Origin: Hemiscyllium ocellatum
Lineage: Eukaryota
DNA length: 64,000 nucleotides
Direction: 5' to 3'
Assembly: GCF_020745735.1 (NCBI RefSeq)
Contig: NW_026868080.1
Coordinates: 1 to 64,000 of the forward strand
Numbering within the stretch: the stretch's first letter is position 1; each line of letters begins with the position of its first letter. The notes under the pieces were generated by a model that made no database searches, was not told the origin of the DNA, and was given only the letters and a program-made list of their open reading frames with translations. Position numbers and translations under genes: made by a program. Positions 10,401-54,187 of this stretch are shown here, piece after piece.

Positions 10401-11310
10401 CACAGCCTCCATTCTCAGTGACTGGCCTTAAAACATTACAGGTACTATCCAGCATGCAGCAGAGAGCGCACAGTACTATCCCAGCAACTCTACCTGGATC
10501 AAAAGAGTGAAGAGGGAATGCCTCAGATTGTAATTACAGAGTCCCAACAGCTTTCAGTTTCTGTTTTGTTTGGAAACTTGTAACCTCCACAGTTTCCAGA
10601 TCAAAGGGATCATTTGAAAATGATTGATGATTAGCTGTCAGTCCATACTACAATGAAAGTCTTACTGATTGACAGACCAAACAGCCAATTGTGACAATGC
10701 TGTGCTGAAATGCATCCAATCAGCTGAAGGGAGTGATCCATTTCCAAAGCACACAGAAACAGAGACTGAATCTTCTTCAACTTTAATCTGATTTGATTGG
10801 CTTTGGGAGAATAAACACTAAAATTAACAGCCCAGACAGAGGAAGCTGCTCAAATTCACAGCCACAATGGTGCTTGAGGAAAACACTTGTGGAGGTTTTC
10901 TCAGTAACATGAGAATCCTGTCCCTTTAAACAGTGACAAAACCTTAAATTGGAACTGGTGGCTGAGCAGGAAGGAGATCTGTTTTACTGAAGCAGAGACT
11001 TCAGAGGTTCACATTGTTTTGTACAGCTGGCACTTTTCAGCATCTTCAAGAGATTTTACTTAGCATCACAAGTCAACCCTGACCCGTCAAACACTCCCAG
11101 GACAAGGACAGCATGAGGTTTTACATAGGATAAAACTCTCTCTACGCTGTCCCAATGAACTGCCTGAACTCCTGAACCTCAGAAGTGTCCCCTAGACCAG
11201 TCCTGAGAAGGAGGAGCGTTGACATTCAGTGCTGACAATGACCTTTGTCCTGCCAGCTCAGCCCTGTTCTGTTTAAAGTTGTGTCTCCTCTGTGGACTGT
11301 CTCAAACACT

Positions 11311-11639
11311 CTACACACATTCTGATCTCCTGATGCTCTTGCTGAGGGGAGAGGGGAGGGTCACGTGGGTGAGGGCACAGGAGAAGCGAGCGTTGGACTC
11401 CCAGTCAGACCCAGAGAGGGTCAGCAGGCTGCTGACACTGTAGGTGCTGTCCGAAGCTCGCAGGTAGTTGCTGGTCTGAACCCCGTCCGAAATGACTGCA
11501 CCGTCCTTCTTCCACTGCACCTCCAGCTCATCGGGATAGAAGTGATTGGCAAGGCACACCAGGGTGGCAGTGCCCTTGGCATTGACCTGCTCCAGGGAGG
11601 GGGGCAGCAGGGTCAGCTTGGGCTGAGAGTTCTCACGGC
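11311..11639 (-). CDS. IGKC: Ig kappa (type III/NS4-like) light-chain constant exon, open and apparently intact
   Basis: Acceptor ctttcag at 11641-11640, then GC+RENSQPKLTLLPPSLEQVNAKGTATLVCLANHFYPDELEVQWKKDGAVISDGVQTSNYLRASDSTYSVSSLLTLSGSDWESNARFSCALTHVTLPSPLSKSIRRSECV*. Both C1-set Cys, the Trp and the terminal Cys are present, and the phase matches the J donor (A|GC=Ser). Confidence 0.96.
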
Positions 11640-12959
11640 CTGAAAGACAAAAGAAACAATTTTAATCCCTGCCATTTGAAGAAACTTCAACTCTCAGAAC
11701 ATTCACTGGTAAAATGTTTGAACATTTGTATCCAATACCTACCAAACCCGACAAAAAAAACAGGTATTGTTTAAATTGCTTCTTGGGAGTGAGTGTCACG
11801 AGCAGGGCCAGCATTTATTTCTCATCCCTAATTGCCCCGAGAAGGTGATGGGGAAAGACAAGGAACAGGTTTGGACTCTTGTTTAGGGAATGAATGTGGG
11901 CAGCTGGAAGGCTATCAATGGGGGAGCAGTTTAGTGACAGTGATCAGAACTCAGTGAGATTGAGAGTAGAGATGGAAATGGAGAACCATGCAGCAAGTGT
12001 TAACGTTTTCACTTGGGAATGAACTATTTTACTAAACTGTGCGATAATTTAGTAAAAGTGGACTGGAACCAACGCCATCATGTGAAATCAATGTCAGGGC
12101 AGTGGGATCCCTCAAAAGAAAAGACAGAGATTGTTCAGAATCTTTTCCCACAATGAGTAAGGGTGGGACTCCCAAATCTAGACTCTCAGCCTGGGATGTC
12201 AAAAGGCAGCCAGAGTAGGGAAGACCAAACAGGGAAGGTGATGTTGGTTATCTGGAGTTATCTGCAGAAAGCCCAGAGGAGGATCGAAAATGCAGGGGTG
12301 GCATTGAACAGGACCTGAGGAAGGCAAAGACAGGATTAACTGTGTCCAACTGAATCAAAGAAATCACAACAAACAAGAGGATTGGGGTCAGGTACTGACA
12401 TGGATTGAGAACTGGTTGGCAGACAGGACAGGAAGAGCGAGTCTTTTTCTGAATGGCAGATATTTCCCAGTTGGGGTACCACAGGGATCAGTCCTTGGTA
12501 CCCAGTTATTCATAACATATAATAATAGAGTCAGAGTCAGAGAGACCCAAAAGGCCCAACGGATCATTGTGTCAAAAAACAACTCAATACTTCTCATCAA
12601 TTTACCAGCATGAGAGAATTAGATGCGGTATGTGTTCAAGAAGGAATTAGATACAGTTCTTAAGATTAATGAGTTCAAAGAATGTGGGGAGCAAGCAGGA
12701 ACAGGGGACAGTGTTGGATGATTGACCATGATCATATTGAATGGTGGAGCAGGCTTGAGGGGCCGAATGGCCTACTGCTGCTCCTGTGTTTTATGTTTCT
12801 GTCCGTTTCTCAGATAATGAAGGAATGTCTCTCGTCAGCTTGAGGCTGGAAGTCAGATGTGTGTGCAGGTGGAAGATGTGGCCATGGTGATTAATGAATG
12901 CAGGTCAGTGAGGTGGTTCAGAAGACACATGGGATAAACTGTTTTTCTTTTTCCCTTGA

Positions 12960-15040: not shown

Positions 15041-15499
15041 TAATTGTATTTCAATCGAGCCCCTAACACCTCAGGCTCTCCCAAAGACATTTACATTTTG
15101 TTTTAAAACAAGTCACTGTTGCAATGTCAGGAAAGGGACAGCCAATTTCTACACAGCAAGATCCCACTAGAAGCAATGAGATCAAAGAGCATTTTTGATG
15201 ATGTTGGTCCAAGGATAAATATTGTCCTGAACTCAACCCAAAGAGAAAGGAATTTGGTTCAGTTGGATGGAAAATGAGAAAATGGAAGGTAAAGGAGAAG
15301 GCAGGATTGCTGGTTAGTGATGGGATTGATTGTTACCAGAAAATAAAAGGAAGGGATAGAATTTTTGAATATTAAAGGAACCATAAAAGTGCAGGGAAAA
15401 CGAACAATAGAACAAACTTAAAGGGTTTGTATCTAAATGCACGAAGCATTCTGAGTAAGGCAGACAAAGTGATGCCATAAATCGAGGTAAATTGAGTTT

Positions 15500-18335
15500 C
15501 CAAGGAATTTAAACTAGTTAAAGTGGAGGAGGGCTCAAGAGAGGCTATTCGGTTTCTAGAAGGCATACCAGGAGAGAGAGTACAGAAAGGAACAAGAGTC
15601 GAGCATCAAGCACAGCAGATAAGAGGATAATGATGAGAAAGAGAGCAGTCAATGCAGGACTGAAGGTGTTGGACTTAAAAGCACACAGTATACGCAATGA
15701 GCTGGTAGTGCAGATTGAAACTGGCAGGTACGATGTTGTGGGTATCACAGAGACATGGCTGTAAGGGGATCCGGGCTGGGAACTAAATATCCAAGGATAC
15801 ATGTCCCATCAAAAGAACAGGCAGATGGACAGAGGGGGAAGAGTTGCCTTGTTAGTACGATATTAAATTAAATCAAAGCAAGAAGTGAGATAGAGTCAAA
15901 AGGTGTAGAATGTGTGTGGGTAGAGTTGAGGAACCGCAAGAAATAAAGAATATGATGCAAGTTATGTCCAGATCTCCAAGCAGTAATCAGGGTGTGGAGA
16001 AGGAAATCAATCAGGAGACAGAAAAGCCGTATACAAAATGTCAGGGCAGACCTCAATGGATAGGTGGACTGGGTAGCACGTCTCAAGAAAAGGTTTTCAT
16101 GGATGTCTACAAGATCGTTTTTGGAGCAGCTTGCGGTTGAGCCATTATGGAACAGGCAGTTCTGGATTCAGTGATGTGGAATGAGGCAAACTTGATTAAT
16201 GAGTTGAAGGTGAAAGTATCCTTCTGGAAAAATGATCATAATATGATAGAATTCCCCCTGTAGTTTGAGAGGGAGAAGCTGCAATCAGATGGATCTGTAT
16301 TTCAGTTGAGTAAAGGGAACAACAAAGACATGAGGAAGGAGTTGACCAGAGTTGGTTGGAAGGGGAGCCGAGCAGGTAAGATGGTGGGGCAGCAAACAGC
16401 AGGGTTTCTGGGCATAATTCAGGAAGCAGAGCAGGAATTCATCCGAAAAAAGAAGAAACATACTAAGGGGAGGACAAGGCAACCATGGCTGGTGAGGGAA
16501 GTCACGGACAGCATAAAAGCAAAAGAAAAAAATGCACAATGTGGTAGAGAAAAGTGGGAAGCCAGAGGGTTAGGAAGCCTTTGAAAACCTGGAGAGGATA
16601 AATAAAAAAGCATTAAAGGTGGAGAAGGGGAAATGTGGGGGTAAGTTAGCCGGTAATACAAAAGAAGATTGCACGAGTTTTATCAGATGTATAAAAAGGA
16701 AGAGGAAGGCAAAAATAGACATTGGAAAATGAGGCTGGAGAAAGTATTATAGGAAGTGAAGAAATAGCAGAGGAATTGAATCGAAGCTGAAAGGTTGAAT
16801 GTGGATAACTCACCCAGACTAGATGAACTACATGAGTGTGTTCTGAAGGAGATCACTGAGTAAATTATGGAGGTATTGGAGATGATCTTTCAGGAATCAA
16901 TGGAGTCAGGGTATGACAGTGTGGTGGACAGGGATCTGATGGGGGCAAGGGACTGGAAAGTGGCTCACATAACAGCCCTGTTTAAGAAGGGAGGGAGGAG
17001 GGAGAAGATGGGAAATTATAGGCCAGTTAGCCTGGACTCAGTTGTTGGTAAGGTTTTAGACTTCAATTTAAGGATGAAGTTGCAGAGGACTTAGAGGTGC
17101 AATTGTAAACTAGGGCTGAGTCAACACGGCTTCATCAAGGGGAGGTCATGCCTGGCAAATCTGTTAGAATTCTTTGAGGAGGCAATGAGCCAGTCAGACA
17201 AAGGAGAGTCAAAGGAAGTAATGTATTTGGATTTCTAGAAGGCCTTTGACATTAGATAAAAGCTTACAGTGTGAGGGCCGAGGCACTGGCATGGACTAAG
17301 GACTGGCAGGTTGGCATAAAGCAGAGAGTGAGGAAAAATGGTCGTTTGTGACTGGTAGAGTCATGTAGGGGTCAATGTTAGGACCTTAACTATTCACGTT
17401 ATACATTAACAATCTGGATGAAGGAAGTGAAGACATTGTTGCTAAGTTTGCAGATGACATGAGATAGGTGGAGGGACAGGTAGTGTTGAGGAAGTGGGAA
17501 GAATGTAAAAGCTCCTGGAAAGGCTGGGAGAGTGGGCAAAGAAGTGGCAGATAGAATACAATGTGTTACAGTGTGAGGGTGTGCACTTTGGGAGGAAGAA
17601 GAGATGCAAAGACTATTTTCTAAATAAGAAAAGCTTTCGGAAATCTAAAGCACGAACCTCATTCAGGTTTCCCTTCAGGTTAACAGGCAGGTCCAGTTTG
17701 TGCTTGGGAAGGCAAATGAAATGTTAGCATTCATTTCAGTAGGGTCAGAATACAAGAGCAGAGATGTACTGCTGAGGCTGTGTAAGGCTCTGGTCAGACT
17801 GCATTTGGAATATTGTGAGCAGATTTGGGACCCATATTCTAAGAAACCATGGGCTGGCATTGGAGAGGTTTACAACAATGATCCTGGGGATGAAGGACTT
17901 ATCGTATCAGATGTGCTTGAGGACTCTGGGTCTGTACTCAATGGAGTTTAGAAGGATGAGGAGGGATCTTATTGAAATTTACAGAATACTGATCAACCTG
18001 GATAGAGTGGATGTGAAAAAGATGTTTCCAAAAACAGGAGAGAGTCGGTAACCAAGGCACAGCCTCAGTATGAAGGGCCAACCCTTTCGAGCTGAGATGA
18101 GGAGGAATTTCTTCAGCCAGAGGGTGGTGAATCTGTGGAATGTATTGCTACAGAGGGCAGTGGAGGCCAAGTCACTGAGTGTATTTAAGACAGAGATAGA
18201 TAGTTTGTGATAGTTAAGGGGATCGAACGTTCCTGTGGATCAAGCAGAGAATGGGGGTGAGAAGCATATCTGCCAAGATCAACTGGCAGAGCAGATTCAA
18301 TGGGCTGAATGGCTGATTTCTGCTCCTATTTCTTA
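15500..18335 (+). mobile_element. Degenerate CR1 ORF2 (endonuclease + RT) in the J-C intron of cluster 1
   Basis: Endonuclease start YDVVGITETWL, RT motifs GNYRPVSL and FADD, and a 3' tail. Confidence 0.9.
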
Positions 18336-18429
18336 AAGTCTTCTGGAGAGTTTCCCCAAAACCCTGGAACACTGAACCCACTGGACTGTGAGCCCTGCTG
18401 GAGCTGTTTGTCATCAGAACTTTGCCAAG

Positions 18430-19380
18430 AGATGACCAAAGGGTGAAGAGAGTGTGCATTTAGGTGGGAACTTCAGAATGCTTCCTAGCTCCTGGAATAC
18501 CATGAGAACAGAAAGTGTGGTCAGTGACAGCAGTTGGAACTCCGGGTTTTGGAGCTTGAGCAGCAGCTGGTGTCAGTGCGGAGCGTCCGTGAGGCTGAGA
18601 GCTCCGTGGAGAGCACGTTTCTAGATGTGGTCACTCTGCAGCTTCAGCGAATGCAGGGTGAGAGGGAATGGGGGAGCAGCAGACAGTCCAAAAGGACCAG
18701 GCAGCTAGTAGTGGAATCCCCTGAGTGCATCGCACTCTCTAACCAGGATTCAGTTCAGAATCCTGATGAGAATGATGGTTCATCTGGGGAGTGCAGCCAG
18801 AGCCAAGCCCATGGCACCAAGGTGGAGGGTTCAGCAGTACAGGGGGTACAAGGAAGAGGGAGAGCGAGAGGAGATTCGAGAGTGAGGGCAATCGATAGGT
18901 GTTTCTGCAGTTGCAGATGGGAATCCAGGATGGTGTGTTGTCTCCCTGGTGCCAGGGTCAAGGATGTCTCTGAGCGGCTGCAGAGCACCCTGAGGGGAGA
19001 GGGGGAACAGGCAGCAGTCGTGGTCCACATCGGTCCCAGTGACAGAGGGAGGAAAGGGATGTGGTCCTGCAGTCAGAATTTAGGGGGCTCTGGAGGGAAT
19101 TAGTACTAGGATCTCAAAAGTTAGAATCTCCGGATTTCTCCCAGTGCCCCATCCAAGTGAGAATAGGAACAGGAGGATAACACAGGTGAATGTGAAGCTG
19201 GAAAGAGGATCCAAGTTGGAGGACTTTAGATTCTTGGGACATTGAGACTGGGTCTGGGGGAGATGGGACCTGGACAGACCAGACAGCGTTGTTCCTGAAC
19301 CGAGCTGGGACTGAGTTCCTTTGGGGTGATTTACTAGTGCAGTTGGCGAGGGTTTAAATTAACTTGGCAGGGCTGTGGGA
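18430..19380 (+). mobile_element. CR1 ORF1 fragment (SGNH/esterase-like domain)
   Basis: ORF 18534-19103, RMVCCLPGARVKDVSERLQSTLRGEGEQAAVVVHIG. Confidence 0.85.
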
Positions 19381-19619
19381 GCCAGGAGGGAATAACAGAG
19401 AGGAACACCAAGGACCACAGAATCCTCAGAACAGTCAACAAGTCACCACCCAATGGGAAGGATGCAGAGGAATACAAATGCAAGGAATTTACAGATACCT
19501 GCAAACGTGATAGAGTCATTATAAATGGTTCTTTAATTTTTGAATATAGACTGGGGTAGTAGCAGTGTAACAGGCAGGGAGGGGCCAGAGTTGTGAGAGT
19601 CTGTTCAGGTGAATTTTCA

Positions 19620-21120
19620 GGTGGCATTGTGGCCAGTGAAGAAGGCTGTCTAAGAGTACAATGGGATCTTGACCAACTGGGCCAGTGGGCTGAGGAATGG
19701 CAGATGGAGTTTAATTCAGATAAATGTGAGTGCTGTACTTTGCAAAGCCAAACCAAGGCAGGACTTTTACGGTTAATGGTAGGGCCCTGCGGAGTGTTGC
19801 TGAACAAAGAGACCGAGGGGTGAAGGTGCAGGTGCATTATTCCTTGACAGTGGAGTCACAGGTAGACAGGGAGATGAAGAAGGTGTTGGGTATGCTTACT
19901 TTTATTGGTCACTGCATTGAGTAAAGGAGTTGGGACATGATGTTGCAGCTGTACAGCAGCTGGTGAGGCCACTTTGGGAATAATGTGAACAATTCTGATC
20001 ATCCTGAGATAGGAAGGATGTTGTTAAACTTAAAAGGCAGCGGAAAAGATTTACAAGGATGTGGCCAGGAATTGGAGGGTTTCCGCTGTCGGGAGAGGCT
20101 GAAGAAATGGGCCTAATTTCCCTGCAGCATCTAAGGCCTCGAGGTGACCTTATGGATGTGCAGAAAATCATGAAGGGCATGGACAGGGTGTATATCCAAG
20201 GTCTTTTCCTTGGGAACGGGAGTCCAAAACAAGAGGGCATAGGTTTAAGGTGAGAGGCAAAAGATTCAAAAGGGACCTGAGGGGTAACTTGTCACACAGA
20301 GGGTGGTGTGTGTCTGGATCGAGCTGCTAGAGAAAGCGTTGGAGGCAGATACAGTTACAACATTTAAAACACATTGGGATGGGAACATGGATAGGAAGGG
20401 TTTAGAGGGATGTAAGCCAAATGCTGGCAAATGGGATGAGGTCATTTAGGATATCTGGTTAACACAGGCAAGTTGGACTGAAATGTCTGTTTCCACGCTG
20501 TATGACTCCATGACTATGAGGGACTGGAAAAGCTGAGACTTTTTTCCCTCTAGTGTAAGAGTCTGAGGAGTGACCTTATAGAGGTTTATAAAATCATGAG
20601 GGACATAGATAATGTAAATCATTCAGGAAGCAGGTGAAATTTTGTAGAAATGGCAAAAATATTCCCAAAGATCATTCCAGGGATGAGGAACATCAGTTAT
20701 TAAGATAGTTTGGACAATTTGGGACTGACTTCTTTGGAGAAGGCTGAGAGGAGATTTGTTGGAGGAATTAAAATCAGGAGGGGCCTGGATACAGTAAATA
20801 GGGAGAAAATGTTCCCAAGAGAAAGGATTGAGACCGAGAGACCACAGATTGAAGGCAATTGGGAAAAGTCACAAAAGTGAGATGGGGAACAACATTTTGG
20901 CCAGTGGTGGTTAAGGTGTGGAGTGCACTGCCTGAGAGTGTGGTGGAGGCAGCTTCAATTAAAACATTCCGAAGGGAATGAGACTGATATTTGAAAAGCA
21001 ACAATGTTCAGGGTGACAGGGAGAAGGCAGGAGAATGACACTCAGTGAATTGCTCATTCGGAGAGCCAGTCCAGACAGGATGGGCAGAATGGCCTCCTTG
21101 TGCAATGTGACAATTCTGTG
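19620..21120 (+). mobile_element. Stacked CR1 3' fragments
   Basis: QWAEEWQMEFNSDKCE and RGD..VYKIM remnants, repeated tails. Confidence 0.85.
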
Positions 21121-21547
21121 ATTATGTGATTGAGCAGAGTTAAAGCTGGGGGAGGTGGGAGCTCGGTGTCTCACTGTGCTGCTGCTGAGGTCAGTGAGGT
21201 CAGAGACTGGGACAGGGAGCCAGAACTCACATCAAACTCTGCCCGTGTCCGTCACACTGAGACTGGCAGGAGGCTACTCATTGAATTCACTCCATGCTGC
21301 AGGAATGGGACCACAGGCTGCAAATGGACAGAGCTCCTCCACACGATGAGTAAAACTTACTGACTTATATCTTGCTGTTTAATGGGGTTATAGGACTAAA
21401 GAAATACATGTGTACACCGTATGGGACGCGGTGTTCCTCAATCAAACATTTCCTTCACTGCAACACTTCAACAATTCAGTATTTGTGTTTTATAAATTGT
21501 GTTTAGAGATTGAAAGGGTTAATAACAGAGGATTGAGGTTTACTTCC

Positions 21548-21582
21548 TCAGTCTGAGCTTGGTTCCTTTACTGAACGTAAGC
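21548..21582 (-). pseudogene. IGKJ: J kappa segment of cluster 1, defective
   Basis: G CTT ACG TTC AGT AAA GGA ACC AAG CTC AGA CTG A = LTFSKGTKLRL, so FGxG has become FSKG. The donor reads GGAAGT where the paralogue has GTAAGT. Confidence 0.92.
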
Positions 21583-21621
21583 CACAGTGAGAGCTCCCAG
21601 TGCAGAGGCTGTACAAAAACC
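21583..21621 (-). other. 23-RSS of J1 (perfect heptamer and nonamer)
   Basis: Plus strand CACAGTG 21583-21589, 23-nt spacer, ACAAAAACC 21613-21621. Confidence 0.97.
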
Positions 21622-22017
21622 TCAGCTCTCTGCTTCCCTCCATCATTCTCAACCGCTCCCTGTCTCTCTCTCTCTGTCTCTTACTTAGTCTCACCCACTC
21701 CCTGACCTCCCTCTGTCTCTCTCGGTAGTGTTCAGCTGGGCTTGTGCAGTTTGTGAACTTTATTTTTCGATGTTAAATCTTGCAGCTGCTCTTCACGTGT
21801 GGCCATGGAATGCAAGAGGGAAACTTGAGGCCTTCAGTGAGCGGTGGACACCACAGGGACTGGAGTGTGTCATGTACAGTGACAATCCCGGTATGGGGTA
21901 ATTTGTTCAATTTCATTTACATATAACTGTGGATGTATCAGTGCAGGAGGTGGAACTGTGTATATGTCACAAAAATGTGGAATGTGTTAGTACAGGTGGG
22001 GGTGCTGTGCTTATTGA

Positions 22018-22045
22018 GATTTTTGGATGGCTCTGTATCACCGTG
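22018..22045 (-). other. 12-RSS of V1 (degenerate)
   Basis: Minus strand CACGGTG + ATACAGAGCCAT (12 nt) + CCAAAAATC: one heptamer mismatch and two nonamer mismatches. Confidence 0.9.
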
Positions 22046-22333
22046 AAGGCCAGCTGTAATGCTGCTGACAGTCATAGTCAGCGACATCCTCATTCTGAAC
22101 GTTGCTGATTGTCAGGGTGAAACTGGTCCCTGATCCACTGCCGGTGAATCACTCGGAGATTCCTGTGAGTTGAGTTGCTGCAGCATAGATCAGGAGAGAG
22201 GGTTTCTGACCTTCTCGCTACTGGTACCAAGCAAGGTAGCTGCTAATGGCCCTACAGGTGATGGTTGCGGTCTGGCCCAGTCCCACTGACAGCAGTGGGG
22301 GAGACTGGGTCATGATGATGTCCTCACTGATAC
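22046..22333 (-). pseudogene. IGKV: V kappa exon of cluster 1, pseudogene
   Basis: [94 protein letters not shown]. Lesions: TAG and TGA stops, a 9-nt CDR1 deletion and YYC>YDC. Confidence 0.95.
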
Positions 22334-22519
22334 CTGAGGGATCAGAGAGAAACACAGTGAAGTCAGAACTTTCACACAAAGAGCCTGTCAAATGAGAGAT
22401 TGTTGGAGACACTGAGCATTCCTCTGGTTTCAGCATTTTCCCTTCAATCACAAGTCAGTGGAATTGGAGTGAAATGGAGAGCAGCTAAAGATTCAAGGTG
22501 GAAGGAGAGAGATTTGTAC

Positions 22520-22568
22520 CTGCGACACAGAATGCCAGGGGCCAGATCAGCTGGATGTGTGAAATCAT
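22520..22568 (-). CDS. Leader exon of pseudo-V1 (MISHIQLIWPLAFCVA-G)
   Basis: 49-nt exon, ATG at 22568, GT donor at 22519-22518, intron 22334-22519. Confidence 0.92.
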
Positions 22569-22721
22569 GGTGTGTGCTCCTGTCCCTGTGCCTGGTTCCT
22601 GATAAACTCTCCCTTCACTGGGCTCTGCTTTATAAAGCTGCAGCCTGTGAGAGTCTGACTGGGTGTTCCTCAGTATGTAAATGGCATCAGGCAGAGAGAG
22701 CCACGTCAGCCCCTCACACTT

Positions 22722-22727
<6 letters not shown>
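22569..22727 (-). promoter_or_regulatory. V1 promoter: PU-box, TGACGT, octamer variant ATTTACAT, TATAAA
   Basis: Plus-strand complements: CACTTCCTCTT 22717-22727, ACGTCA 22703-22708, ATGTAAAT 22675-22682, TTTATA 22629-22634. Confidence 0.8.
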
Positions 22728-22758
<31 letters not shown>

Positions 22759-23649
22759 GGCCCATTGTGTCTGTGCTGGTAAACAAAGATCTGATGATCC
22801 TCCAGCTCTTGGCCCATTACCCTGGAGGCTACAGCAACACAAGGGAATATCTAAATACTGCTCCAATGTCATGAGAGTTTGTGACTCAACCAGCCTTTCA
22901 GGCAGTGAGTTCCAGACTCCCACCACCCTCTGGGTGAAAACATTTCTCCCTAACTCTTCTCTCACTCTCCAACTCGATTGGGCCTGGACTCAGAAGGATA
23001 AGAGGGGATCTGATTGAAATGTATAATATTCTAACAGGGCTGGGCAGGGAGGAGGTTTCCCCTGGTCGGGGAGTCTGGAACCGGGAGACAGTCTCAGGGG
23101 GATATGGGGTAGACTATTTCAGACTGAGATGAGGAAACATTTCTTCACTCAGAGGATGGTCGATCTGTGGAATTATCTTCCACTGAAGGCTATGGAGGAC
23201 AAGGAACTGAATATATTCAAGAGAAAGAGAGAGATATTTGTTTTGCATTTTAACAGCATGAAGGGAATGGGGAGAAAGTAGGAAGGTGACTTCAAGAGAG
23301 AGGATCAGCCATGATCATACTGAATGACAGAACAGTCTCAAAGGGCCGAATGGCCTACTCCTGCAGCACTTTCTTTGTGTCCGTGTCTATTTTTCCTTCA
23401 ATCTCTGTCCCTGGTTATTGAGTCCTTGACTCTTGTAAAAAGTGCCTTCCTACTCCCCCTATCACTGCCCTGAATAATCTTATCCCCCTCTATCAGGTCC
23501 CCTCTCAGCCTTCACTGCTGCATGGAAAACAACCCCAACCTTTCCAATCTTTCCCCACAGCTGACCCTCCATCCCAGGCAGCATCCTGGTAAATCTCTGC
23601 ACCCTCTCAAGTACAATCACATCCTTCCAAGAATGTGGTGACCAGGACT

Positions 23650-23659
23650 TGTCCCTCTG

Positions 23660-23691
<32 letters not shown>

Positions 23692-24200
23692 ACTCTGTCT
23701 CAAAGCCACTCTCTCCAACTTACACTTCCTCACTCCGTCTCATAATCTCTATTTCTGCATCTTTCTCTCTCACCATCACTCGCTCCATTGCTCACTTCAA
23801 TTGAAAACCTCCAAATGTTAATTGCCCCTCTCTATTCCTCTCTCTGTCTCTCCCTCCCTCTCTGCATCCCAATCTACAGTCTCTCTCCCTCCATCTCTGT
23901 CATTCTGTCTCTGACCATACTCATGTCTCTCTCTCTCTCTCACACTCAACCCTACCCACTCTCTCTTGATTCCCTTCACTCTTGTTATCACACCCATCCT
24001 ATCTCTTTTTCTCTATCCATCCCGATCAGTCACATCTTGTTTCTCTCTCTCTCTATCCCTCAATCACACCACGTCTACCTCCCTCTACCTCTCTCTTGGC
24101 CCCTTCACATATCACACACTGTCTCAGATGCCCCTCCCTCTATCGCTCGATCACACACACAATTTGCATCTACCTCTCTCTTTGTCTTGCTTCTCTGTCT
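23650..24200 (+). repeat. CT-rich low-complexity tract upstream of V1
   Basis: (CT)n runs and pyrimidine skew; a further (TC)n at about 22727-22753. Confidence 0.85.
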
Positions 24201-24659
24201 TTCTCACAGTGTCCCAGGTGGTGAAAGTTGAATTCAGGATAAATCTCCCTCTGCTCTGCCCCACTAATGGATGTTAACCCTTGACCCAAAAGCATGTCTT
24301 TTCCTGGAGTAACTCCCCATTTCTCACAGGGATTGACCTCATTCAGGACGATGGACAGATTCTTGTCAAATGAAGGGCAGTTCTGTTCTGTTGCCCTATT
24401 CTCACTGGGGACTGGTTTGGACACAAACCTCATTCCATGAAGGCCCAGCAGAGAGAGGAGATCCTCAGGCCATCAGTGTGAGCTGGAGGGACAGGACAAT
24501 TTCTGACTCAGTGACCCAGCCTGTCCATCCACAACATGTTCCAATCCTTTTCCCTTTCCTTCCCCTGCCATGATCAGTCTCTGAATCAGGCTGTTTGACT
24601 GGGATGAGGGCTGGAGCATCACACAGTTCCAACAGAAAGGAACTGACCACATACCCACC

Positions 24660-24900
24660 ATGTGTACATGACGTACTGGACTCTCCAACAGAGTCCACTA
24701 AACATGGAATTTAGTTCACAAGGCTGCTCGATAGAGAGACATGGGCCTCCTTCCCACTGAAGTTCCCAGAAGAGACCAGTAAACATGAGCTCCTTCCTGC
24801 TGGAATCTCCAACAGAGACCAGTAAACATTGGCCTACTTCTGATTTGATCCTCCAAGAGAGATCAGTCAACATGGGCCTCCTATTCATTGGACTTTCCGA
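24660..24900 (+). repeat. Degenerate 43-44-bp minisatellite, part A (continues at 26160-26330)
   Basis: Recurrent GAGACCAGTAAACATGGGCCTCCTTCCCACTGGA-like unit. Confidence 0.75.
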
Positions 24901-24904
24901 TTCA

Positions 24905-26155
24905 GACAAGTAGATGACTGAGTTTTTGAAGAAGTAATCACAAACCTTGATAAAGGTAGAGCAGTACACTCTGTCTACTCGGACTTTAGCAAGGCCTTAG
25001 ACAAGGTTCCTCATGGTAGATTGCTCAGTAAGATTATATCACATAGGATCCAAGGAGAGTGAGCCAATTAGATATAAAATTGGCCTGATGATAGGAGGCA
25101 GAGGCTGGTGAGAGAGGGTTGTTCTTCAGACTGGAGGCCAGTGACCAGCCGTCTGCCACAAGAATCGATCCTGGATCCACTGTTGTTCGTCATTTATATG
25201 AACAATTTGGAGAGAAAATAGCAGGAATGGTCAGGAAGTTTGTGGCTGACATTAAAATTGTTGGCATCGTGGACAGGGAAGAAGGTTATCGAAGAGTGCA
25301 ATGTCATCTTCATCAACTGGGCCAGTGGGTCAACAAATCCAGATGGAAATTCTGATGAATGGAAGGAGTTACATTTTGGTAAGGCAAACCAGGGCAGGAA
25401 TTACACAATTAATGGTAGAGCCATGGGGAGTGTTGTTGAACAGAGAGACCGAGGGGTACAGGTACATAGTTCCTGGAAAATGGTGTCACAGGTAGACAGG
25501 GTGGTGAAGAAGGTATTTGGCACGTGCACCTTCACTGGTCAAAGCAGAGAGTACAGGAGCTGGGACATCATGTTACAGCTGTACAAGGCATCGGTAAGGC
25601 CACATTTGGTCACTGTGTACATTTCTGCTCACCCTGCTATAGGAAGGAAGTCATTACGCTGGTTTGAATAAAAGAAAGATTAACAGGGATGTTACCAAGA
25701 TTGGAGGGTTTGAATTATAAGGCGAGGATGGATATGCCAAGATGTTTTTTCCAGGGAATGCAGGAGATTGAGGGGTGACCTTATATAGGTTTATAGAATC
25801 ATGAGGGTCATAGATAAGGTAAATAGCCAAAGTCTTTTCCCCAGGGTAGGAGAATCCAGTACTAGAAGGAATAGGTTTAAGTTGAGGGGGGAAAGGATTA
25901 AAAGGAAACTGAGAGACAACCTTTTCACACAGAGGTTGGTGTGTATGTGTAATGAGCTGCCAGAGGAAGTGGTAGAGGGGAGTACAGTTACTACATTTCA
26001 AGGAGATTTTTACAGCAACATGGATAGGAAGGATTCAGAGAGATTTGGGCCAAACACAGGCAAATGGGATTTGTTCAGTTTTGGAAACTTGGTAAGCATG
26101 GATGAGTTGGGCTGAAGGGCCTGATGCCATGCTGTAAACCTCTATGACTCTATGA
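24905..26155 (+). mobile_element. CR1 RT-to-3'-end fragment inserted in the minisatellite
   Basis: DFSKALDKVPH, FVADIKI and TRRNRFKL remnants; CTATGACTCTATG tail. Confidence 0.88.
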
Positions 26156-28320
26156 TGATGTATACATGAGCCACCTTCCCATAGAACCAGTAAACATGGA
26201 CCTCCGTCCCACTGGAACCTCCAACAGACACCAATAAACATAGACCTCCTTCTCACTGGATGCTTCAGGAGAGACCAGTAAACATGGGCCTCCTTCCCAC
26301 TGGACTGTCCAGTACTTGAGCTGCAAACCCCAAATCCACTCCATCATGAAGGTCCCTTATTTCAGTCTCAACAACACTGTCTGTCTCTGCACGACTTCAG
26401 TCCCCTGACCACAGAAACACTAATTCCTGCTTGTCCTAACTATTGATTCCAATGTCCTCTCCCGGCTTCCTGAAGTCACATTCCATAAACCCCAACTTGT
26501 CTGATATGGAGTGGTCCCTTCCTTGTCTGACATCTGAAGTCGTTCAAGAATGAGCTCACATACAACCAATTGCCTCCATGGCCTCCCTCCTCCCTCAATC
26601 TGTGTCCTGCTGCAGACTCACTTTCCCTCCCTCCCCCTTCCATCTTCTGTCTCTAGTCTCCTGCCCATTGCTGCTTCCTCCATCCCACCATTGACAGCAG
26701 AGCCTTCAGGCCCCTACAGCATGCTCTCTGACCTCCTGCCCTTCATCCCTCCTCCTCCTCTCAATTGTTGTGTTACTGAATATATTGTTCAGTCCCATTG
26801 CTTTTGGTTTACTGTTCCCTTGTCATTGATTTGCTGACTTACTCTAGTGAATCTAGTCTGGGCCTGTTTCCTGAGTTGTCAAGAGTGTTTGAGAAAGCAT
26901 TCTTCTGTAAACTGGATTGTCTGTTTCTCCCAGTCTTTGTGTAAAGGTGAGACTAAGTGTGTGTAAGTTCTTATACAGCACAGACAGAGGTCATTGGGCC
27001 TATTGTGACTGTTAGACAAATTAGTCCAATGAGTCCCATTTACCCAGCCCTTCCTGTATAACCCTGCAATTGTTTCCTTTACAGCTATTTCTCCAAAGGC
27101 CCTTTTGAAAGTTGCTGTTGAATCCACTCCCACTCACCTTGCAGACAGACATCATAAACTCGCTGGATAAAAATGTTCCTATCTTCTCTCTTGTTCTTCA
27201 GACCCTTTCTGAAATGTGTGCCCTCTGGTTACTGACCCTCCTGCCTGGAGAAACAATTTGTCCTGTATTTACTGCATCCAAACTCTCTAATTGTGAACCC
27301 CTCATTGAGTGAGACCTATTTCCAGCACAGGGGGAGAACATTCAGCCTGTCAGGTAAATGCTGTCATTTCATGGAGCAATCCAGTCAGTCCCACCCCCTC
27401 CCCTACTCGACCCCCAGAGCCTTGCAGGTTTATTTCCATCAAGAGCCCATCCAATCTGCCATTGCAATCACTGAGTGTCTTCACCTGCCTCACCTGAATG
27501 GCACTAATTTCCAATTTATTACCAATTGCTGTTCAAAACAAAGTTCTTCCTGACATCCCGAATCTCTTGCCCAACAAAATGTAAGGTAACTTAAATGTGA
27601 AGATGGGATTTTGTCTCCACACGGACTGTGCGGTGGTCACCCTTACTGATACTGTCATGGACAGATACACCAGCAGCAGGCAGGTTGGTGAGGGTGATAG
27701 TGAGTATGTTGTTCCCTCTTGTTGGTTCCCTCACCACCTGCCCCAGGTCCAGTCGAGCAGCTGAATCAGGTGGAACCTGACCAGCTTGCTCAGTAGTGAT
27801 GCTTCTGAGCAGCTTTTGATGGTGGACTTTGAAGTCCCTTACTCACGGTATATCCTGCATCATTCCCACCCTCAGTGCTCCCTCCAAGTGTTGTCAAACA
27901 TGGAGGAGGACTGACTGCTCAGTTGAGGTTGGAGGGGAGGGCGGTGCTATGTGGTAATCAGCAGGAGGTTTCCTTCCCCATGTTTGACCTGCTGTCATGA
28001 GGCTTCATGGGTTCCATAGTTAATGGTGAGGACTCCCAGGGCAACTCCCTTCTGACTGTACACACCACTGTGTTGCTTCCCCTGCTTGGTCTATCCTGCC
28101 AGTTAAAAACTGAATGAGGGAACAATTCTGTGCAGGTTTCACAGCTTGGAGACAGAGCTGCTGCTGGATTCTGTTTCTAATCTCGAAGTGCAGGCGTGTG
28201 TGTTTGTGAGAGAGTGACTGACACTTTTTCCATCACTGTGCTGTTTCTGAAAAGAAAAATCCCAGAACCAGCCTCCTGTGCTGTCAGGTTCCAGGGAGAG
28301 CAGACAGTTCACAGTTTTCT

Positions 28321-28512
28321 CCCATCTCAGTAACAAACACCCAGCTGCTCCGAGCTCCTTCTTTCACTTCCTCTTTTGGTGAATTTTCAACCTTGTGCTC
28401 TGACAGTCTTTGCAACTATTTTTTACACTGGGGCTTTCTGCTGTGGTCAGAATCTCTAATAATAAGTGTCTAATCAGTGACAATCACAGCAGCTAAGAGC
28501 AGTCAGGACTGA
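28321..28512. promoter_or_regulatory. Candidate B-cell enhancer upstream of V1 (EICE + E-box + RUNX)
   Basis: TTTCACTTCCTC (GGAAGTGAAA on the minus strand) 28362-28373, CAGCTG 28342-28347, TGTGGT 28442-28447. Non-repetitive and conserved in the other arm. Confidence 0.6.
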
Positions 28513-29159
28513 AAAGCCCGGACTCACTGTGTAACATATTGGGAAGATCAAAGCCATCCTCTTCATCTCCTGCTCCAAACTCCATCCCTCTCCCTGGGGG
28601 TCTGCTGCACAACCAGACCCTTTACAAACGTGGCCACATCTCTGAGAATGATCTGACCCCTATATCCTCCATATTATACAGACCAGCCACTGAAAATCTC
28701 AATCATGTCTGTGGGACTCCAAACATGACCATTCCAATGTTGTGCTAGCACACATCACAGCAATCGCCCTCCATAACCTTCAGTTCATCCCAAATTCTGA
28801 TGCCTGTATTCAAACTTGCATCAAGTCCTGTTCCCCCAACCCCCTGCACCCTGTATCTACATTGGCTCCTCTCCAGCAACTCCTTGATTGTCGAGTTCTC
28901 ATCCTTGTTCGCAAAACCCTCTCTGCCCTCCACCCTCCCTATCTCTGCCTCAGTCAGTGTGATCAGCAATCTTGGATGTACAGCTCTCTGTTTCTTCATC
29001 CAAGTCATTCAGAAATATCATAAAAAGCTGAGCTCCCAGCACAGATCCCTGGGGATACCACTATTCACATCTTCCTCACTGGAGGATGCACTCACTATTC
29101 TTCCTCTCTGCCTCCTACCTCCAAACTAATTCCTGACCAAAGACAAATACTTTTCTCTG

Positions 29160-30215
29160 ATTGGCTTGATGGTAGGAAGCAGTGGGTAACAGTGGAAGGA
29201 TGCTTGTCAGACTAGAGGCCTGTGTCTAGTGGAGTGCCTCAGGGCTCAGTCCTGGGCCCATTACTCATTGCTATCCACATCAATAACTTGGATGAGAATC
29301 TGCAAGGCATGATTGGGAAGTTTGCAGATGACATTACAGTAGACATTGAGGGAGGTTATCAGAAATTGCAGCAGGACCTTGATCAGCTGGAGAAATGAGC
29401 AGAGAAATGACAAAATGAGTTCAGAGAGATAATTGTGATAGTTGCACTTTCGGAAGTTTAATCGAGGTGGGAGTACCATGGTGAATGGTAAGGCCTTAAG
29501 GACTGTAGTGAAACAGAGAGATCTTGGAGTTCAGGTACACGGTTCTCTGGAAGTTGAGTCACAGTTCGACAGGGCAGTGAGGAAGGCTTTTGACACACTG
29601 GCCTTCATCAGTCAGGGCATTGAGTATAGAAGTTGAGAAGTTATGTTACCATTGTACAGAACGTTGGTGAGGTCGCACTTGGAGTATTTGGTCACCTTGT
29701 TATAGGAAGGACATTATTAAACTGGAACAAGTTCAGAGGAAATGTACAAGCATGTTGCTAGGACTCAACAATCTGAGTTTTTGTGAGAGGTTGGACAAGC
29801 TAGGACTTTTTTCAGAGAGTGTAGGAGACTGAGGGTTTTTTTTTTAGAAGTGTATAAGACCTTGAGAGACATGGATAGGGTGAATGCACTCAGTCTTTTT
29901 CCCAGGGTTGGGGAATTGAGGATGAGAGGGGTTTTAGGTTAGAGGAGAAAGAATAAAAGGGAACCTGAGGGACAACTTGTTTACACAGAGGGTGGCACGC
30001 ATATGGAATGATCTGCCAGTGGAAGTGATTGAGGCGGGTATATTAACAACTTTAAAAAGGCATTTGGACAAATGCATGGATAGGAAAGGCTCCGAAGGAT
30101 ATGGGCCAAGTGCAGGGAAATGGGGTTAGCATGGATGGACATTTTGGTCAGCATGGACCAGTGTGGACCAAAAAGCCTGTCTCTGTGCTGTAGGACTCGA
30201 TGACTCTTTGACTCT
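29160..30215 (+). mobile_element. 5'-truncated CR1, present only in arm 1
   Basis: RT motifs SGVPQGSVLG and FADD; the flanks are contiguous in arm 2 at about 48700-48770. Confidence 0.88.
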
Positions 30216-31519
30216 ATAATTCCATAGGTTTCTATGTTTACGGACAGTCTCTCAAACGCAGAACAAAGTAACGAACAGCAGGACTAGGCCATTCAGCCCT
30301 TCGAGTGGGGTCTGCCATTAAATATGACCATGGCTGATCATTCAACTTAGTCCCGTTCCCACTTTTTTCCCATAACCTTAATCCCTTTCGTCCTAAGTCC
30401 CTTTAGACCTATCTCCTTCTTGAAAACTTTTAATGTTTTGGTCTCAACTGCTTTCTGTGATAGAATATTCCATGAGCTTCCCACTCTCTGGCTAAAGAAA
30501 TGTCTCCTCAGCTCAGTCTGAAATAACCTTTCCCTTTTCTTTAAACTGTAATTCCTGGTTCTGGATTCTCCAATGATCAGGAACATACTTCCTGTGTTTT
30601 TCCGGTCTTGTCCTGTTAGGATTTTAAAGGTTCCAACGTGATTCCTCTCAATCTTCTAACCTCCAGTGAATATAATCCTAACTGATCCAGTTTCTCAACA
30701 GATCTAAGTGCTGTCATCCCAGGAATCAGTCTGGTAAACTTTCGCTGTCCTCCCTCCACAACCAGAACATCCTTTCTCAGATAAGGAGACCAAAACTGTA
30801 CACAATACAATCATAAAATCACACAGTACAGAACAGGTCCTTCAGCCCATTAACTGTGTACCAGCCAAACTACACTAAACCTGCACCAATCCCACTTTCC
30901 AATATGAGCCCATAGCTAGAATGTTATGACATTTCAACTGCTCACCCAAGTACTTTTTAAAGTTTGTGAGGTTTCCCACGTCAACTGCTCTCCCAGGCTG
31001 TGCGTTCCAGACCCCCACCACCCTCTGGATAAAAAAACATTTTCCTCAAAACATCTTGAAACTTCCTATCTTTCACAATGAATGTAAACCAACTTTTTAT
31101 TGACCCTCCCATGAAGAAGAACAGCTGCTTTCTCTCCTCCCTGTCCATTCCTCTCATAACCTTATACACCTCGATCAGGTCCCCCTCCACCTTCTCTGCT
31201 CTGAAGAAAACAACCGAGCTGATCCAATTTCTCTTCATCACTAAGAGGTTCCATCCCACACAACATCCTGGTGATTCCCCTCTGCACCCCATCCAGTGCA
31301 ATCACATCCTTCCTACAGTGTGGTGACCTGAACTGCACACAGTACTCCAGCTGTGGCCTAACCAATGTTCTGCTTAACTGCACCATATCCTCCTGCTTTT
31401 ATAACCAATACCTGACATGACCAAGGCAAGTGTCCTCTGTTAACCTGTCTTGCCACATTCGGGGATCAGTGGACAAGTACCCCAAGATCATTCTGTTCCT
31501 TTGAGCTTTCTCAGGTCCA

Positions 31520-46329: not shown

Positions 46330-49310
46330 TCCGCAGGGACCAATAACCTGCATTTCAGATTACTTCAGGAATTGCCCAAAAATTTTGGGAACATTGGTGT
46401 TCAAGATTCTATTGATTCTGGAACTTTCCCAGTGACTGGAGAGTTGCGAATGTAACATCACTGTTTAAAATGGGAGGGAGAGAGAAAGTGGGCAACCTGG
46501 ACCAGTCAGCCTGGCATTGGTATTGGGAAAAATAGTCAAGTTCGTTGTGAAAGATTTAATCACTGGGCACGTGGAAGACAGTGATAGGATTAGACAGAGT
46601 CAGCATGGTTTGTGGAAAGGGAAATCATGCAGAACAAATTGACTGGAATTGTTCGAGGATGGAATGAGCAGATTTGACAAGGGGGAGCCAACGGATGTGG
46701 TTTATCTGGAACCTTCAGAAGGCTTTTAAACAGTCCCACAGTAGAAATTAGCGAGTAAAAGTAAGACTCAATGGACTGGGGCAGTGTACTGACATGGATA
46801 GAGAAGTGGTTGGCAGGCTGGAAACAAAGAGTAAAAAAAAAACAGACCTTTTCAGAAAAAGGTCTGTTTTTTTTACTCTTTGTTTCCAGCCTGCCAACCA
46901 CTTCTCTATTCATGTCAGTAATGTTCATATTTGTTCATGGTTTAGATGAGGGAACTTAAGAGTAATATCTCCAATTTGCAGATGACACAAAGCTGGGTGG
47001 GAGGGGGAGCAGTGAAGAAGATGCAGAGATGCCTGTGTCCGTGTATACCAGTCACTGAAAGTCAGCGTGTAGGTGCAGCAGGCAGTGCAGAAGGTAAATG
47101 ATATGTTACCTTTATAGTGAGAGAATTTGCGTACAGGAACAGGGATGTCTTGCTGTAATTGTATGGGGCCTTAGTGAGTCCACTCCTGAATATTCAAACC
47201 AAAACTGGTTCAGTGACAGGAGACAGAGGGTGGAGGCAGAAATTTGTTTATGTGACTGGGCCCAGTGTGCAGTGGGATACCACAGGGATCAGTGCTGGGT
47301 CCCTTATTGTTCAGGATGTATTGAAACAATGAAGATGAGAATGTGAGAGGTGAGGGGTGGGGGTGAGTGGATGATGACTGAGTTTTTGGATGACACGAGG
47401 TTTGGCAGATGGTTGACAATGAGGAAGAAGGTCTTGGGTGACACGAGGATCTAACTGGATTGGTCAGATGGGCAGATCAGAGTCAGATGGAACTTACCCC
47501 TGATAAATGTGAGGTGATGAACTTTGGACAATGTAACAGGTGAATAAAGTATTGATGAAATCATATGGGACACTTGCCTTTATCATTTCAGTTATAGATG
47601 AGAAGACCAGGGAAGATATGTTGGAGCTATTCAGAATTTTTGTTAGGCCACAGCTGGAGTACTGTGTGCAGTTCTGGTCACCACGCAATCGGAAGGATGG
47701 GATTGTATTGGAGGGGGTGCAGAGAATAGTCACCAGGATGTTGCTTGGGATGAAGCATTTCAGCGATGAAGAGAGGCTGGATAAACTCGGGTTGTTTTCT
47801 TTGAAGCAGAGAAGGTTGAGAGGACCTGATAGAGGTGTAAACGGCTATGAGGGGAATGGACACAATGAATAGAAAGCAGTTGTTCCTCTTCTTCGGAGTT
47901 GGCACACATTCACTGTGAAAGACAGGAGCTTCATAGGGGATTTGAAGAGGAGATTTTCACCCAGAGGGTGGTGGGGGTCTGGTTTGCATTGTCTGGGCTG
48001 GTAGTTGAGGAGGACTTTTAAAAGTACTTGGATTAACCCTTGAAATATCATAACATTTAAAGCTATGGGCCTTGTGTTGGAAATTTGGATGAATGCAGGT
48101 TTACTGTAGTTTGGATGGTACAGGTACAATGGGTCGAAGGGCCTCTTCTGTACTGTGCGATTTTACGATTGTATTGTGTGCAGTTTTGGTCTACTTATCT
48201 GAGGAAAGATGTTCTGGCTGTGGAGGGAGGGCAGCGAAGGTTTACCAGGCTGACTCCTGGGATGACAGCAATTAGACTTAGATCTGATGAGAAACTGGAT
48301 CAGTTAGGATTATATTCACTGGAGGTTAGAAGATTATGGGGAGTCACACTGAAAACTCTAGAATCCTAACAGGACAAGACAGGATGTTCCTGATGATGAA
48401 GGAGTCCAGAATCAAGGATTAAAGTTTAAGGATACGGGAAAGGACATTTAGAGCTGAGATGGAGAGAAATATTTTCATTCTACAGGAAGCCTGTAGACGT
48501 TTCTGTCACTGAAAGCAGTTCAGCTCAAACCACTGAATGTTTTCCAGAAAGGGCACAATACAGTTCTTAGAATGAAAGGGATCAAAGGTTATGGGGATGA
48601 AGCAGGAACAGGCAACTGAGTTGGATGATCAGCCATGATCATATTGAATGGCAGAACAGGCTCGAAGGGCTGAATGGCCTATTCCTGCTCCGAGTTTCAC
48701 TGTTTGAGAGATTGTTCATCAACGTGGAACCATATTGAATAAGAGAAAAAACATTTGCCTTGGGTTAGGAATTAGTTTGGAGATAGGAGACAGAGTGAGG
48801 GAATAATGTGTGTGTCCTCAAATGAGCAAGAGGTGAATAGTGGTGTGCCCAGGGATCCGTCCTGGGACTTTAGCATTTCATAATATTTCTGAATGACTTG
48901 GATGAAGGAATAGAGAGCCATATATCCAAGATTGCTGACCACACTGAGTGAGGCAGCTAGGAGGAGGTTACAGAGATGGGGAGGGTCGATGGACAGGGAG
49001 GGACTTCAGAACAAGGACGAGAATTTGAAAATCGAGGTGTTATTGGACCGGGAGCCAATGTCGCTCAGTGAGGACAGTGGGGGATGGGGATGGGATTTGT
49101 TGCGAGTTCGGATTCGGGCAGCAGAGTTTTGGTGTGAGCTGAAGATTACAGAGGGCAGTGGCTGTGATGTGGCCCAAGACAACATTAGAATGGTCATGTT
49201 TGGAGTCCCAAAGCAACGAGTGGGACTTTCAGTGAGTGATCTCTGTGCTGTGGAGGATTTGGGGCTCAGATCAGCCTCAAAGATGAGGCCAAGATTTTAA
49301 GGAATCTGGT
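46330..49310 (+). mobile_element. Mosaic of CR1 RT/3' fragments
   Basis: ORFs 47540-47872 and 48085-48369 (RPQLEYCVQFWSP); largely paralogous to 28560-31400. Confidence 0.8.
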
Positions 49311-49324
49311 ATGAAATAAAAGCC

Positions 49325-49538
49325 GAAAAAGCTGCAGATGCTGCAAATGAGGAACAAAAACAGAAATTGCTGGAAAAGCTCGGCAGGTCTGGCACCATCT
49401 GTGGAGAGAAAGCAGAGTTAAAATTTTGGGACGTGAACCTTCTCAGAACTGTTCTGAGGAAGGGTCACTCGACCTGAAAGGTTAACTCTGATTTCTTTCC
49501 CCAGATGCTGCCAGACCTGCTGAGGTATTCTGTTTTTG
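49325..49538. mobile_element. MER6-like hairpin element, absent from the paralogous arm
   Basis: GCTGGAAAAGCTCGGCAGGTCTGGCACCATCTG ... CAGATGCTGCCAGACCTGCTGAG; no equivalent near 28620. Confidence 0.6.
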
Positions 49539-49649
49539 TAAAGAGTCTGGTTGAGCAGCAGACAGTGCTCAGGGAGAGGGATGGAGGTTGTACCGGGACC
49601 TGAAGGGGATGGCTTTGATCTTCCCAATGTGTTTCCCAGTGAGCCTGGC

Positions 49650-54151: not shown

Positions 54152-54183
<32 letters not shown>
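53640..54183 (+). repeat. GA-rich polypurine low-complexity tract ending in (GA)n next to the V2 promoter
   Basis: Strong purine skew; (GA)n at about 54156-54182. Confidence 0.85.

Positions 54184-54187
<4 letters not shown>

Follow-up and report, generated by a model that had tools for sequence, protein, structure and literature searches.

The antibody genes of sharks lie in hundreds of separate mini-loci of variable, joining and constant segments (V-J-C), which raises the question how each mini-locus is switched on, rearranged and hypermutated alone, and how a B cell comes to use one of them. This question is considered here for a stretch of 64,000 nucleotides (nt) from the shark Hemiscyllium ocellatum (assembly GCF_020745735.1, contig NW_026868080.1, positions 1 to 64,000 of the forward strand), which we refer to as the window. 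The window contains two immunoglobulin (Ig) kappa-type V-J-C mini-loci in head-to-head orientation. It also contains a large inverted duplication, in which positions ~15246-31435 (arm 1) are paired with 63682-47568 (arm 2). A conserved non-coding block 5' of the V gene of each cluster offers a concrete candidate for the switch: it is short and well bounded, occurs once per cluster and has a PU.1/IRF-E-box core like that of the mammalian kappa 3' enhancer. Judged from its distribution, conservation and motifs, the block is, on balance, probably a cluster-autonomous B-lineage enhancer on which PU.1/Spi-B and IRF4/8 would act together with an E-protein, with support from MEF2 and RUNX.

A conserved block upstream of each kappa V gene

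The block was delimited by alignment of the two arms and by a 22-copy MAFFT alignment, and is present twice in the window:
49535 to 49893, + strand (sense to V2): arm 2 copy of the upstream block, with the V2 start codon 4.5 kb downstream
28272 to 28628, - strand (sense to V1): arm 1 copy of the upstream block, with the V1 start codon 5.75 kb downstream

Both copies have the identical orientation relative to their own V gene. A previous reading of the window, made from the letters without database searches (the sequence-only reading), had described a unique block of about 190 nt at 28321-28512 with a second copy at 49650-49845. These intervals are indeed reverse-complement copies that differ at 13 positions (93.3% identity over 193 nt), and the distances to V given in that reading were borne out (5.75 kb to V1 at 22567 and 4.5 kb to V2 at 54342). 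The 190 nt represent the core of a longer conserved unit of ~355 nt, over which the arms are 89.9% identical. As that reading had also claimed, the flanks are more diverged than the block, with 76-80% identity in the collinear flanks between the arms compared to 90% in the block. The block is 'unique' within the window only; genome-wide there are at least 213 copies, and all of them go with kappa clusters. The inter-cluster interval, described as shared in that reading, is not really so, since each cluster carries its own block copy within its duplication unit. The block is surrounded by remnants of long and short interspersed nuclear elements (LINEs and SINEs), and the edges of the arm 2 copy are lineage-specific insertions: a SINE-like stretch (49311-49534) is missing from arm 1, and the stretch 49868-50189 is missing from a contig of another organism (organism D, see below), in which the block joins 50190-50421 almost directly.

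Two whole-genome searches with the block returned 247-255 first-look candidates. In each search 40 candidates were scored, and every scored copy was full length and shared 92-100% identity with its query copy. A 31-mer around the Ets-IRF composite element (EICE) of the block had 213 genome matches at up to 3 mismatches and its reversed control had none, which places the copy number at ~210-255. A search with the V promoter and leader identified 222 candidates. Since the block counts match the ~220 V promoters, there is about one block per cluster. Among the copies listed, all are located on contig C9 at 5.6-24 Mb or on small contigs that also bear kappa V genes, and for some 31 of the 39 listed blocks a V gene that is also listed was found ~5 kb away in the expected orientation, including V genes that are only 78-85% identical in protein. 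Wherever the V gene could be paired, the listed blocks are positioned 4.5-7 kb 5' of it with fixed orientation. For the most diverged V genes (C9, 5.6-8.6 and 22-24 Mb), which were covered by the coordinates of the 31-mer matches only, the block lies 4.8-7 kb 5' of at least eight. In addition, 20 further clusters were fetched, giving a sample of 22 together with the two in the window, of which seven were chosen by their V gene alone. The block was present in all 22, 4.5-6 kb 5' of V and in fixed orientation. The V gene looks functional in 18 of these clusters and the block accompanies every one of them (18/18), so that the block does not have the distribution of an element missing from functional clusters.

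The embedding in LINE/SINE remnants and the presence of more than 200 copies would also fit a fragment of a transposable element (TE), or a dispersed repeat, carried along with the clusters. We consider this explanation very improbable. The listed copies are all in the kappa array, indicating that the block is not a dispersed repeat, and those paired with a V gene keep a fixed distance and orientation. Moreover, the TE-rich 64-kb window has only two copies, the copy number equals the cluster number, the block has no open reading frame, and the flanking TEs are the lineage-specific insertions beside it that were described above.

Motif content and comparison with known light-chain enhancers

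Motif conservation was counted over 41 distinct block copies. In V-sense order, the predicted sites are:
49613 to 49619, + strand (arm 1, 28547 to 28553): TCF/LEF-like CTTTGAT, consensus match only, 38 of 41 copies
49688 to 49695, + strand (broken in arm 1): Y-box or inverted CCAAT CTGATTGG, which is the CCAATCAG motif, 23 of 41 copies
49700 to 49709, - strand (arm 1, 28456 to 28465): MEF2 consensus CTAATAATAA (YTAWWWWTAR), consensus match only, 38 of 41 copies
49718 to 49723, - strand (arm 1, 28442 to 28447): RUNX/CBF core TGTGGT, 41 of 41 copies
from 49792, + strand: PU-box GAGGAAGT, together with the EICE
49794 to 49803, + strand (arm 1, 28362 to 28371, - strand): EICE GGAAGTGAAA, pattern match, invariant in 41 of 41 copies
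49818 to 49823, + strand (arm 1, 28342 to 28347): E-box CAGCTG, 14 nt 3' of the EICE, 40 of 41 copies

Both arms contain GAGGAAGTGAAA, CAGCTG at a distance of exactly 14 nt on its 3' side, and TGTGGT, all as the sequence-only reading had it. The EICE consensus GGAANNGAAA is intact in all 100 genome copies listed, and the RUNX core sits in a run of 11 invariant nt, TTCTGACCACA. Of the three longest invariant runs of the block, one is the EICE and another the RUNX site. Of the 32 alignment columns in the EICE, E-box, MEF2 and RUNX motifs 4 are variable, compared to 115 of the remaining 329 block columns (Fisher p = 0.006, permutation p = 0.013), and minor-allele counts are tenfold lower in the motif columns than in the rest of the block. 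These four motifs occur together within 135 nt only at the two block copies in the 64 kb; the MEF2 motif by itself has 6 matches in the whole window. The CCAATCAG motif, for which the sequence-only reading had correctly noted one mismatch in arm 1, is not conserved in the family (23/41), and the CCAAT/Y-box was therefore dropped as a conserved site. The longest invariant run of the block, GGGAGAAAACTGT at 49842-49854, matches none of the motifs scanned and may be a further binding site.

The motifs suggest how the block could work. It would be a cis-regulatory module of each kappa V-J-C mini-locus and would have been duplicated along with the cluster. We infer that an Ets factor of the PU.1/Spi-B type recruits IRF4/8 to the composite GAGGAAGTGAAA, and that an E2A-type E-protein occupies CAGCTG 14 nt away, as at the core of the mammalian kappa 3' enhancer. 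The MEF2 and RUNX/CBF sites, ~75-95 nt 5' of the EICE, would contribute lymphoid input in the manner of tetrapod lambda enhancers. In B cells, the resulting complex would make the cluster accessible and activate its presumed target, the V promoter, from 4.5-6 kb away, and it plausibly would also license V-J joining and hypermutation.

The closest resemblance is to the kappa 3' enhancer (kE3'), which in human and mouse reads GGAACTGAAA, 14 nt and CATCTG (PMC3972084 Fig S5B). In kE3' as in the shark block, a PU.1-IRF4 composite of the form GAGGAAnTGAAA and a downstream E-box are separated by exactly 14 nt and have the same relative orientation, so that the pairing with the mammalian enhancer proposed in the sequence-only reading extends, on the published alignment, to the spacing. 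The shark block reads GGAAGTGAAA, 14 nt and CAGCTG, and thus differs from kE3' in E-box subtype. Each of the two elements is tied to a kappa-type light-chain gene. However, kE3' is located 3' of C and occurs once per locus, whereas the shark block is located 4.5-6 kb 5' of V and occurs once per mini-locus (~220 copies); in the head-to-head pair of the window it has a V gene on either side and does not follow a C. In addition, no NF-kB site was found in the shark block, unlike in kE3'.

A second resemblance is to the lambda enhancers of human, mouse and chicken, in which transcriptional activity and the targeting of hypermutation depend on conserved MEF2, PU.1-IRF4 and E-box sites (PMC3972084). 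The shark block has the same motif set and order as these tetrapod enhancers (including the chicken enhancer cIgLE), namely MEF2, PU.1-IRF4 and a 3' E-box. The lambda enhancers contain two further sites that the shark block is without, one for NF-kB and a second E-box located upstream, and they are located 3' of C, unlike the shark block 5' of V. The distance from MEF2 to EICE is ~84 nt in the shark block compared to ~50 nt in the chicken lambda enhancer, as read from the supplement text (PMC3972084), and the RUNX site between them distinguishes the shark block from the lambda enhancers. Short words shared by eye with the supplement text (GCTTTGATC with kE3' and TCCAATCAG with the chicken lambda enhancer) are at about chance level. 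On paper, the shark block resembles EICE-type light-chain enhancers in its motifs, a likeness that may or may not reflect homology. Because its position and NF-kB features differ, we place it outside strict membership of the kE3' or lambda-enhancer classes.

In the full-text literature searched, which leaves subscription literature largely outside, no cis-regulatory element is described for any shark Ig gene. Teleost Ig enhancers, such as the heavy-chain Emu3' of catfish and zebrafish and the light-chain enhancers of Atlantic cod, occupy non-mammalian positions, also in cluster-type light-chain loci. They are active in reporter assays and differ in lineage and sequence from the shark candidate. 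If the shark block is active, the grammar of light-chain enhancers would reach back to the base of the jawed vertebrates. A wider interpretation is possible, and we put it forward tentatively and with some doubt: the block would be the first antibody-gene enhancer identified in a cartilaginous fish, and the arrangement MEF2-RUNX-EICE-14 nt-E-box would be the ancestral core of the light-chain enhancer of jawed vertebrates, from sharks to mammals, despite a shift in position from upstream of V to downstream of C. With a copy in every mini-locus, each of the ~220 kappa clusters would then be activated autonomously and probabilistically, which would provide a mechanistic handle on the expression of one light-chain gene per B cell and on the targeting of hypermutation in sharks.

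Sequence constraint and gene conversion

Identity of the block to the arm 2 copy is 94-97.5% in 21 clusters, compared to 75-90% for the V-J spacer and for ancestral flanks that are present in most clusters (48800-49300, 50200-50400 and 52500-52800). Only two other non-coding islands equal the block: the V2 promoter, leader and leader intron (95-98.5% across clusters), and 55600-56100 in the J-C intron (~97%). The contrast between block and flanks is smaller with other reference clusters than with arm 2. Because it depends on the reference cluster, all segments were measured on the same 14 clusters, with nucleotide diversity (pi), tree length per site and the gamma shape parameter alpha as follows:
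Block: pi 4.5%, tree length per site 0.29, gamma alpha 0.20
Five flank segments: pi 5.5-11.8%, tree length per site 0.31-0.65, gamma alpha 0.85-2.9
V exon: pi 5.9%, tree length per site 0.39, gamma alpha 0.16
J-C intron island: pi 3.3%, tree length per site 0.22, gamma alpha 0.26

In alpha, which is low, the block is close to the V exon and the J-C island and unlike the flanks. Within the family the block evolves at ~0.4-0.9 of the rate of the flanks, with strong rate variation from site to site. Insertions and deletions (indels) are nearly absent, with 2 gap columns in 361 across the 41 distinct copies. We read this pattern as moderate and mosaic constraint, in which many sites appear fixed and a few evolve fast.

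The block predates this species, as it is present in contigs of other organisms. Its 31-mers were found in runs of four further organisms (shares 0.60, 0.24, 0.16 and 0.12). The contigs of three of these, organisms C, D and E, all begin to match at 49536 and align to the block without a gap: a 233-nt piece in organism C (96.6% identity to the arm 2 block) and the full-length block in organisms D (332 nt, 94.6%) and E (357 nt, 91.0%). The difference from arm 2 is smaller in the block than in other pieces for organism C (3.4% vs 7-17%) and organism D (5.4% vs 8.6-12%), a comparison confounded by paralogy and by the diverged flanks of arm 2. The contigs are not decisive on constraint, because the arm 2 flanks are ~14% different from the family consensus and because paralog lineages may predate the species splits.

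Several observations weigh against the enhancer interpretation. Between the arms, the 90% identity of the block barely exceeds that of the clusters' own J-C intron (87-89%). The arm pair alone therefore gives no proof of constraint, and the constraint signal comes from the wider family comparison. In a partition model with one shared tree, the relative speed of the block is 0.89 compared to 0.91-1.34 for the flanks, which disagrees with the tree lengths from separate trees. We read this disagreement as the result of recombination or conversion among paralogs, which inflates the changes on a shared tree, combined with strong rate heterogeneity. The adjacent segment 50190-50430 is almost equally conserved among most clusters, and in organism E the block is 9.0% different from arm 2 compared to ~8-14% for other pieces, one neighbouring piece (~8%) being equally similar. 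The EICE pattern alone is not rare, with 5 matches in the window compared to 3.6 expected; the matches outside the block, at 41514, 52505 and 59058, have no conserved counterpart in the opposite arm. A motif scan detected no NF-kB site (GGGRNNYYCC) and no octamer in either block copy, and the motifs were picked after the sequence had been seen. Finally, the promoter of the V1 pseudogene is 99% identical to that of V2 despite a neutral divergence of ~12%, and gene conversion could yield identity islands without function.

This last point is the basis of the most serious alternative, in which the block has no function and is an island of identity. The duplication unit would include it as an old, unique piece, and it would look conserved because concerted evolution (gene conversion or unequal exchange) homogenised it among the ~220 paralogs and because its TE-derived flanks align poorly; the motifs would have arisen by chance. 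V1 and V2 share 94-99% identity in the promoter, the leader and a portion of the leader intron, compared to ~90% in the V exon and ~88% in the introns. The identity of the V1 promoter region points to gene conversion or to very recent inactivation, and gene conversion clearly acts in the kappa family. Conversion may thus contribute to the identity of the block as well. In line with this, the arm 2 block is no outlier (4.2% from other clusters, which differ by 4.2% among themselves) while the arm 2 flanks are a clear outlier, and the speed of 0.89 on the linked tree, the roughly intron-level divergence between the arms and the near-chance EICE count would all be expected of such an island. However, conversion alone predicts no difference between the binding-site columns and the rest of the block, yet the former are significantly less variable. 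The gamma alpha of the block is like that of the V exon and unlike that of the flanks, no indels are seen across the distinct copies (apart from the two gap columns) or in the contigs of the three other organisms, the exact EICE-to-E-box spacing is common with the mammalian kE3', and the four lymphoid motifs are found together in the window only at the block. The pseudogene cluster bears on the same issue. No block in the sample is more diverged than that of arm 1, which differs from the family consensus by 6.9%. Functional clusters at equal neutral distance have blocks that differ by 2.5-4.8%, or about half as much; this is only suggestive because it concerns a single lineage. Motif-column invariance, the near-absence of indels and the divergence of the pseudogene-cluster block indicate that conversion is not the whole story, and we regard a non-functional island as rather unlikely. 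The enhancer proposed in the sequence-only reading is thus supported in part, by distribution, motif invariance, slower evolution and spacing; its CCAAT motif is not conserved and its interval is not really shared.

Transcription of the block and other features of the window

RNA from a lymphoid source (run X15) contains kappa transcripts from which the leader intron is spliced out and in which V-J junction ends are present, with a depth of ~1.3 million over the V exon. Over the block the depth is ~11-38, a level comparable with that of other intergenic pieces (3.5-8.6), and this run shows no joint by which the block would be spliced to another segment. The background-like depth and the absence of joints indicate that the block is not an exon of an abundant transcript. 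The depth of 11-38 was not taken as enhancer RNA, because a conserved sequence with 220 copies collapses into deeper contigs than diverged flanks do. Conservation of the block and its fixed orientation relative to V would be compatible with an exon or a structured non-coding RNA gene. With stops in all six frames, no 3-periodicity of the variable columns (44/40/35), no Rfam match inside the block and the RNA data above, this is the least probable of the explanations considered.

The RNA data also bear on the alternative that the block is functional without being an enhancer, for instance as the promoter of a germline (sterile) or non-coding transcript, a silencer, or a boundary between clusters. 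In V-sense, the Y-box at 49688 is followed by an A/T-rich, TATA-like run at ~49740 and then by the PU-box, a layout like that of a TATA/CCAAT promoter, and PU.1 sites are common in TATA-less haematopoietic promoters. The block also lies between clusters, where a boundary would be expected. On the other side, the Y-box is intact in fewer than two thirds of the copies (23/41), the block is far below the V exon in RNA depth and takes part in no splice joint, no CTCF-like core was noticed on reading by eye (no scan was made), and the motif set is typical of activating Ig enhancers. A function of this other kind is accordingly judged improbable, and the B-lineage enhancer remains the reading that we prefer.

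The two clusters and a second conserved island have the following features:
54215 to 54886, + strand: V2 gene, with promoter (ATTTACAT, TATAAA), leader exon 54342-54390, intron and V exon 54573-54886
54887 to 54914, + strand: V2 recombination signal sequence (RSS), 12-spacer
55346 to 55421, + strand: J2, with 23-spacer RSS 55346-55384 and J coding segment 55385-55421
55600 to 56100, + strand (arm 1 equivalent ~20900-21400): second conserved non-coding island, in the J-C intron just 3' of J
22050 to 22567, - strand: V1 pseudogene, with leader ATG at 22567 and V exon ~22050-22335
21583 to 21621, - strand: J1 RSS, cluster 1
11299 to 11646, - strand: C exon (kappa constant region) of cluster 1, with J1 ~10 kb upstream of it

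The open frame of V2 is intact with its start codon at 54342, and the C2 exon lies past the window end. V1 carries two in-frame stops, a change of YYC to YDC and a shortened complementarity-determining region 1 (CDR1) as marks of inactivation. The leader intron (54391-54572) has a mean pairwise identity of 97.5% across clusters, which exceeds that of the following V exon, and an alpha of 0.24. Directly 5' of the V2 promoter is a (GA)n microsatellite (54150-54185) that is also present in arm 1.

The J-C island is ~97% identical across 20 clusters and has 322 genome candidates. It contains a RUNX core, and a scan of the island detected no EICE, MEF2 site or E-box of the form CASSTG. Its 3' part appears TE-derived. 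The island could be an intronic regulatory element and as such a partner or a rival of the upstream block. Within the SINE-like insertion next to the arm 2 block, positions 49396-49507 gave sub-threshold Rfam matches to microRNA precursors on both strands (mir-4524, 25.7 bits compared to a gathering score of 68), which probably reflect a hairpin of the repeat and not a gene.

The whole head-to-head pair of a pseudogene cluster and a functional cluster (window ~15000-64000) recurs at least ten times in the genome, for example on C9 at 9.36-9.39, 11.49-11.52, 13.28-13.31, 14.69-14.72 and 16.55-16.58 Mb and on C10, C13, C456 and C628. The block copies of these pairs are mostly 97-100% identical and their spacing is constant at 21.22-21.42 kb (21.2 kb in the window), which indicates recent segmental duplication or, in part, assembly redundancy. 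In three of the 20 sampled clusters J abuts V directly (L035 7497-7829, L038 7499-7837 and L040 7497-7828); germline-joined VJ genes are a known feature of sharks, and these three clusters are of this kind.
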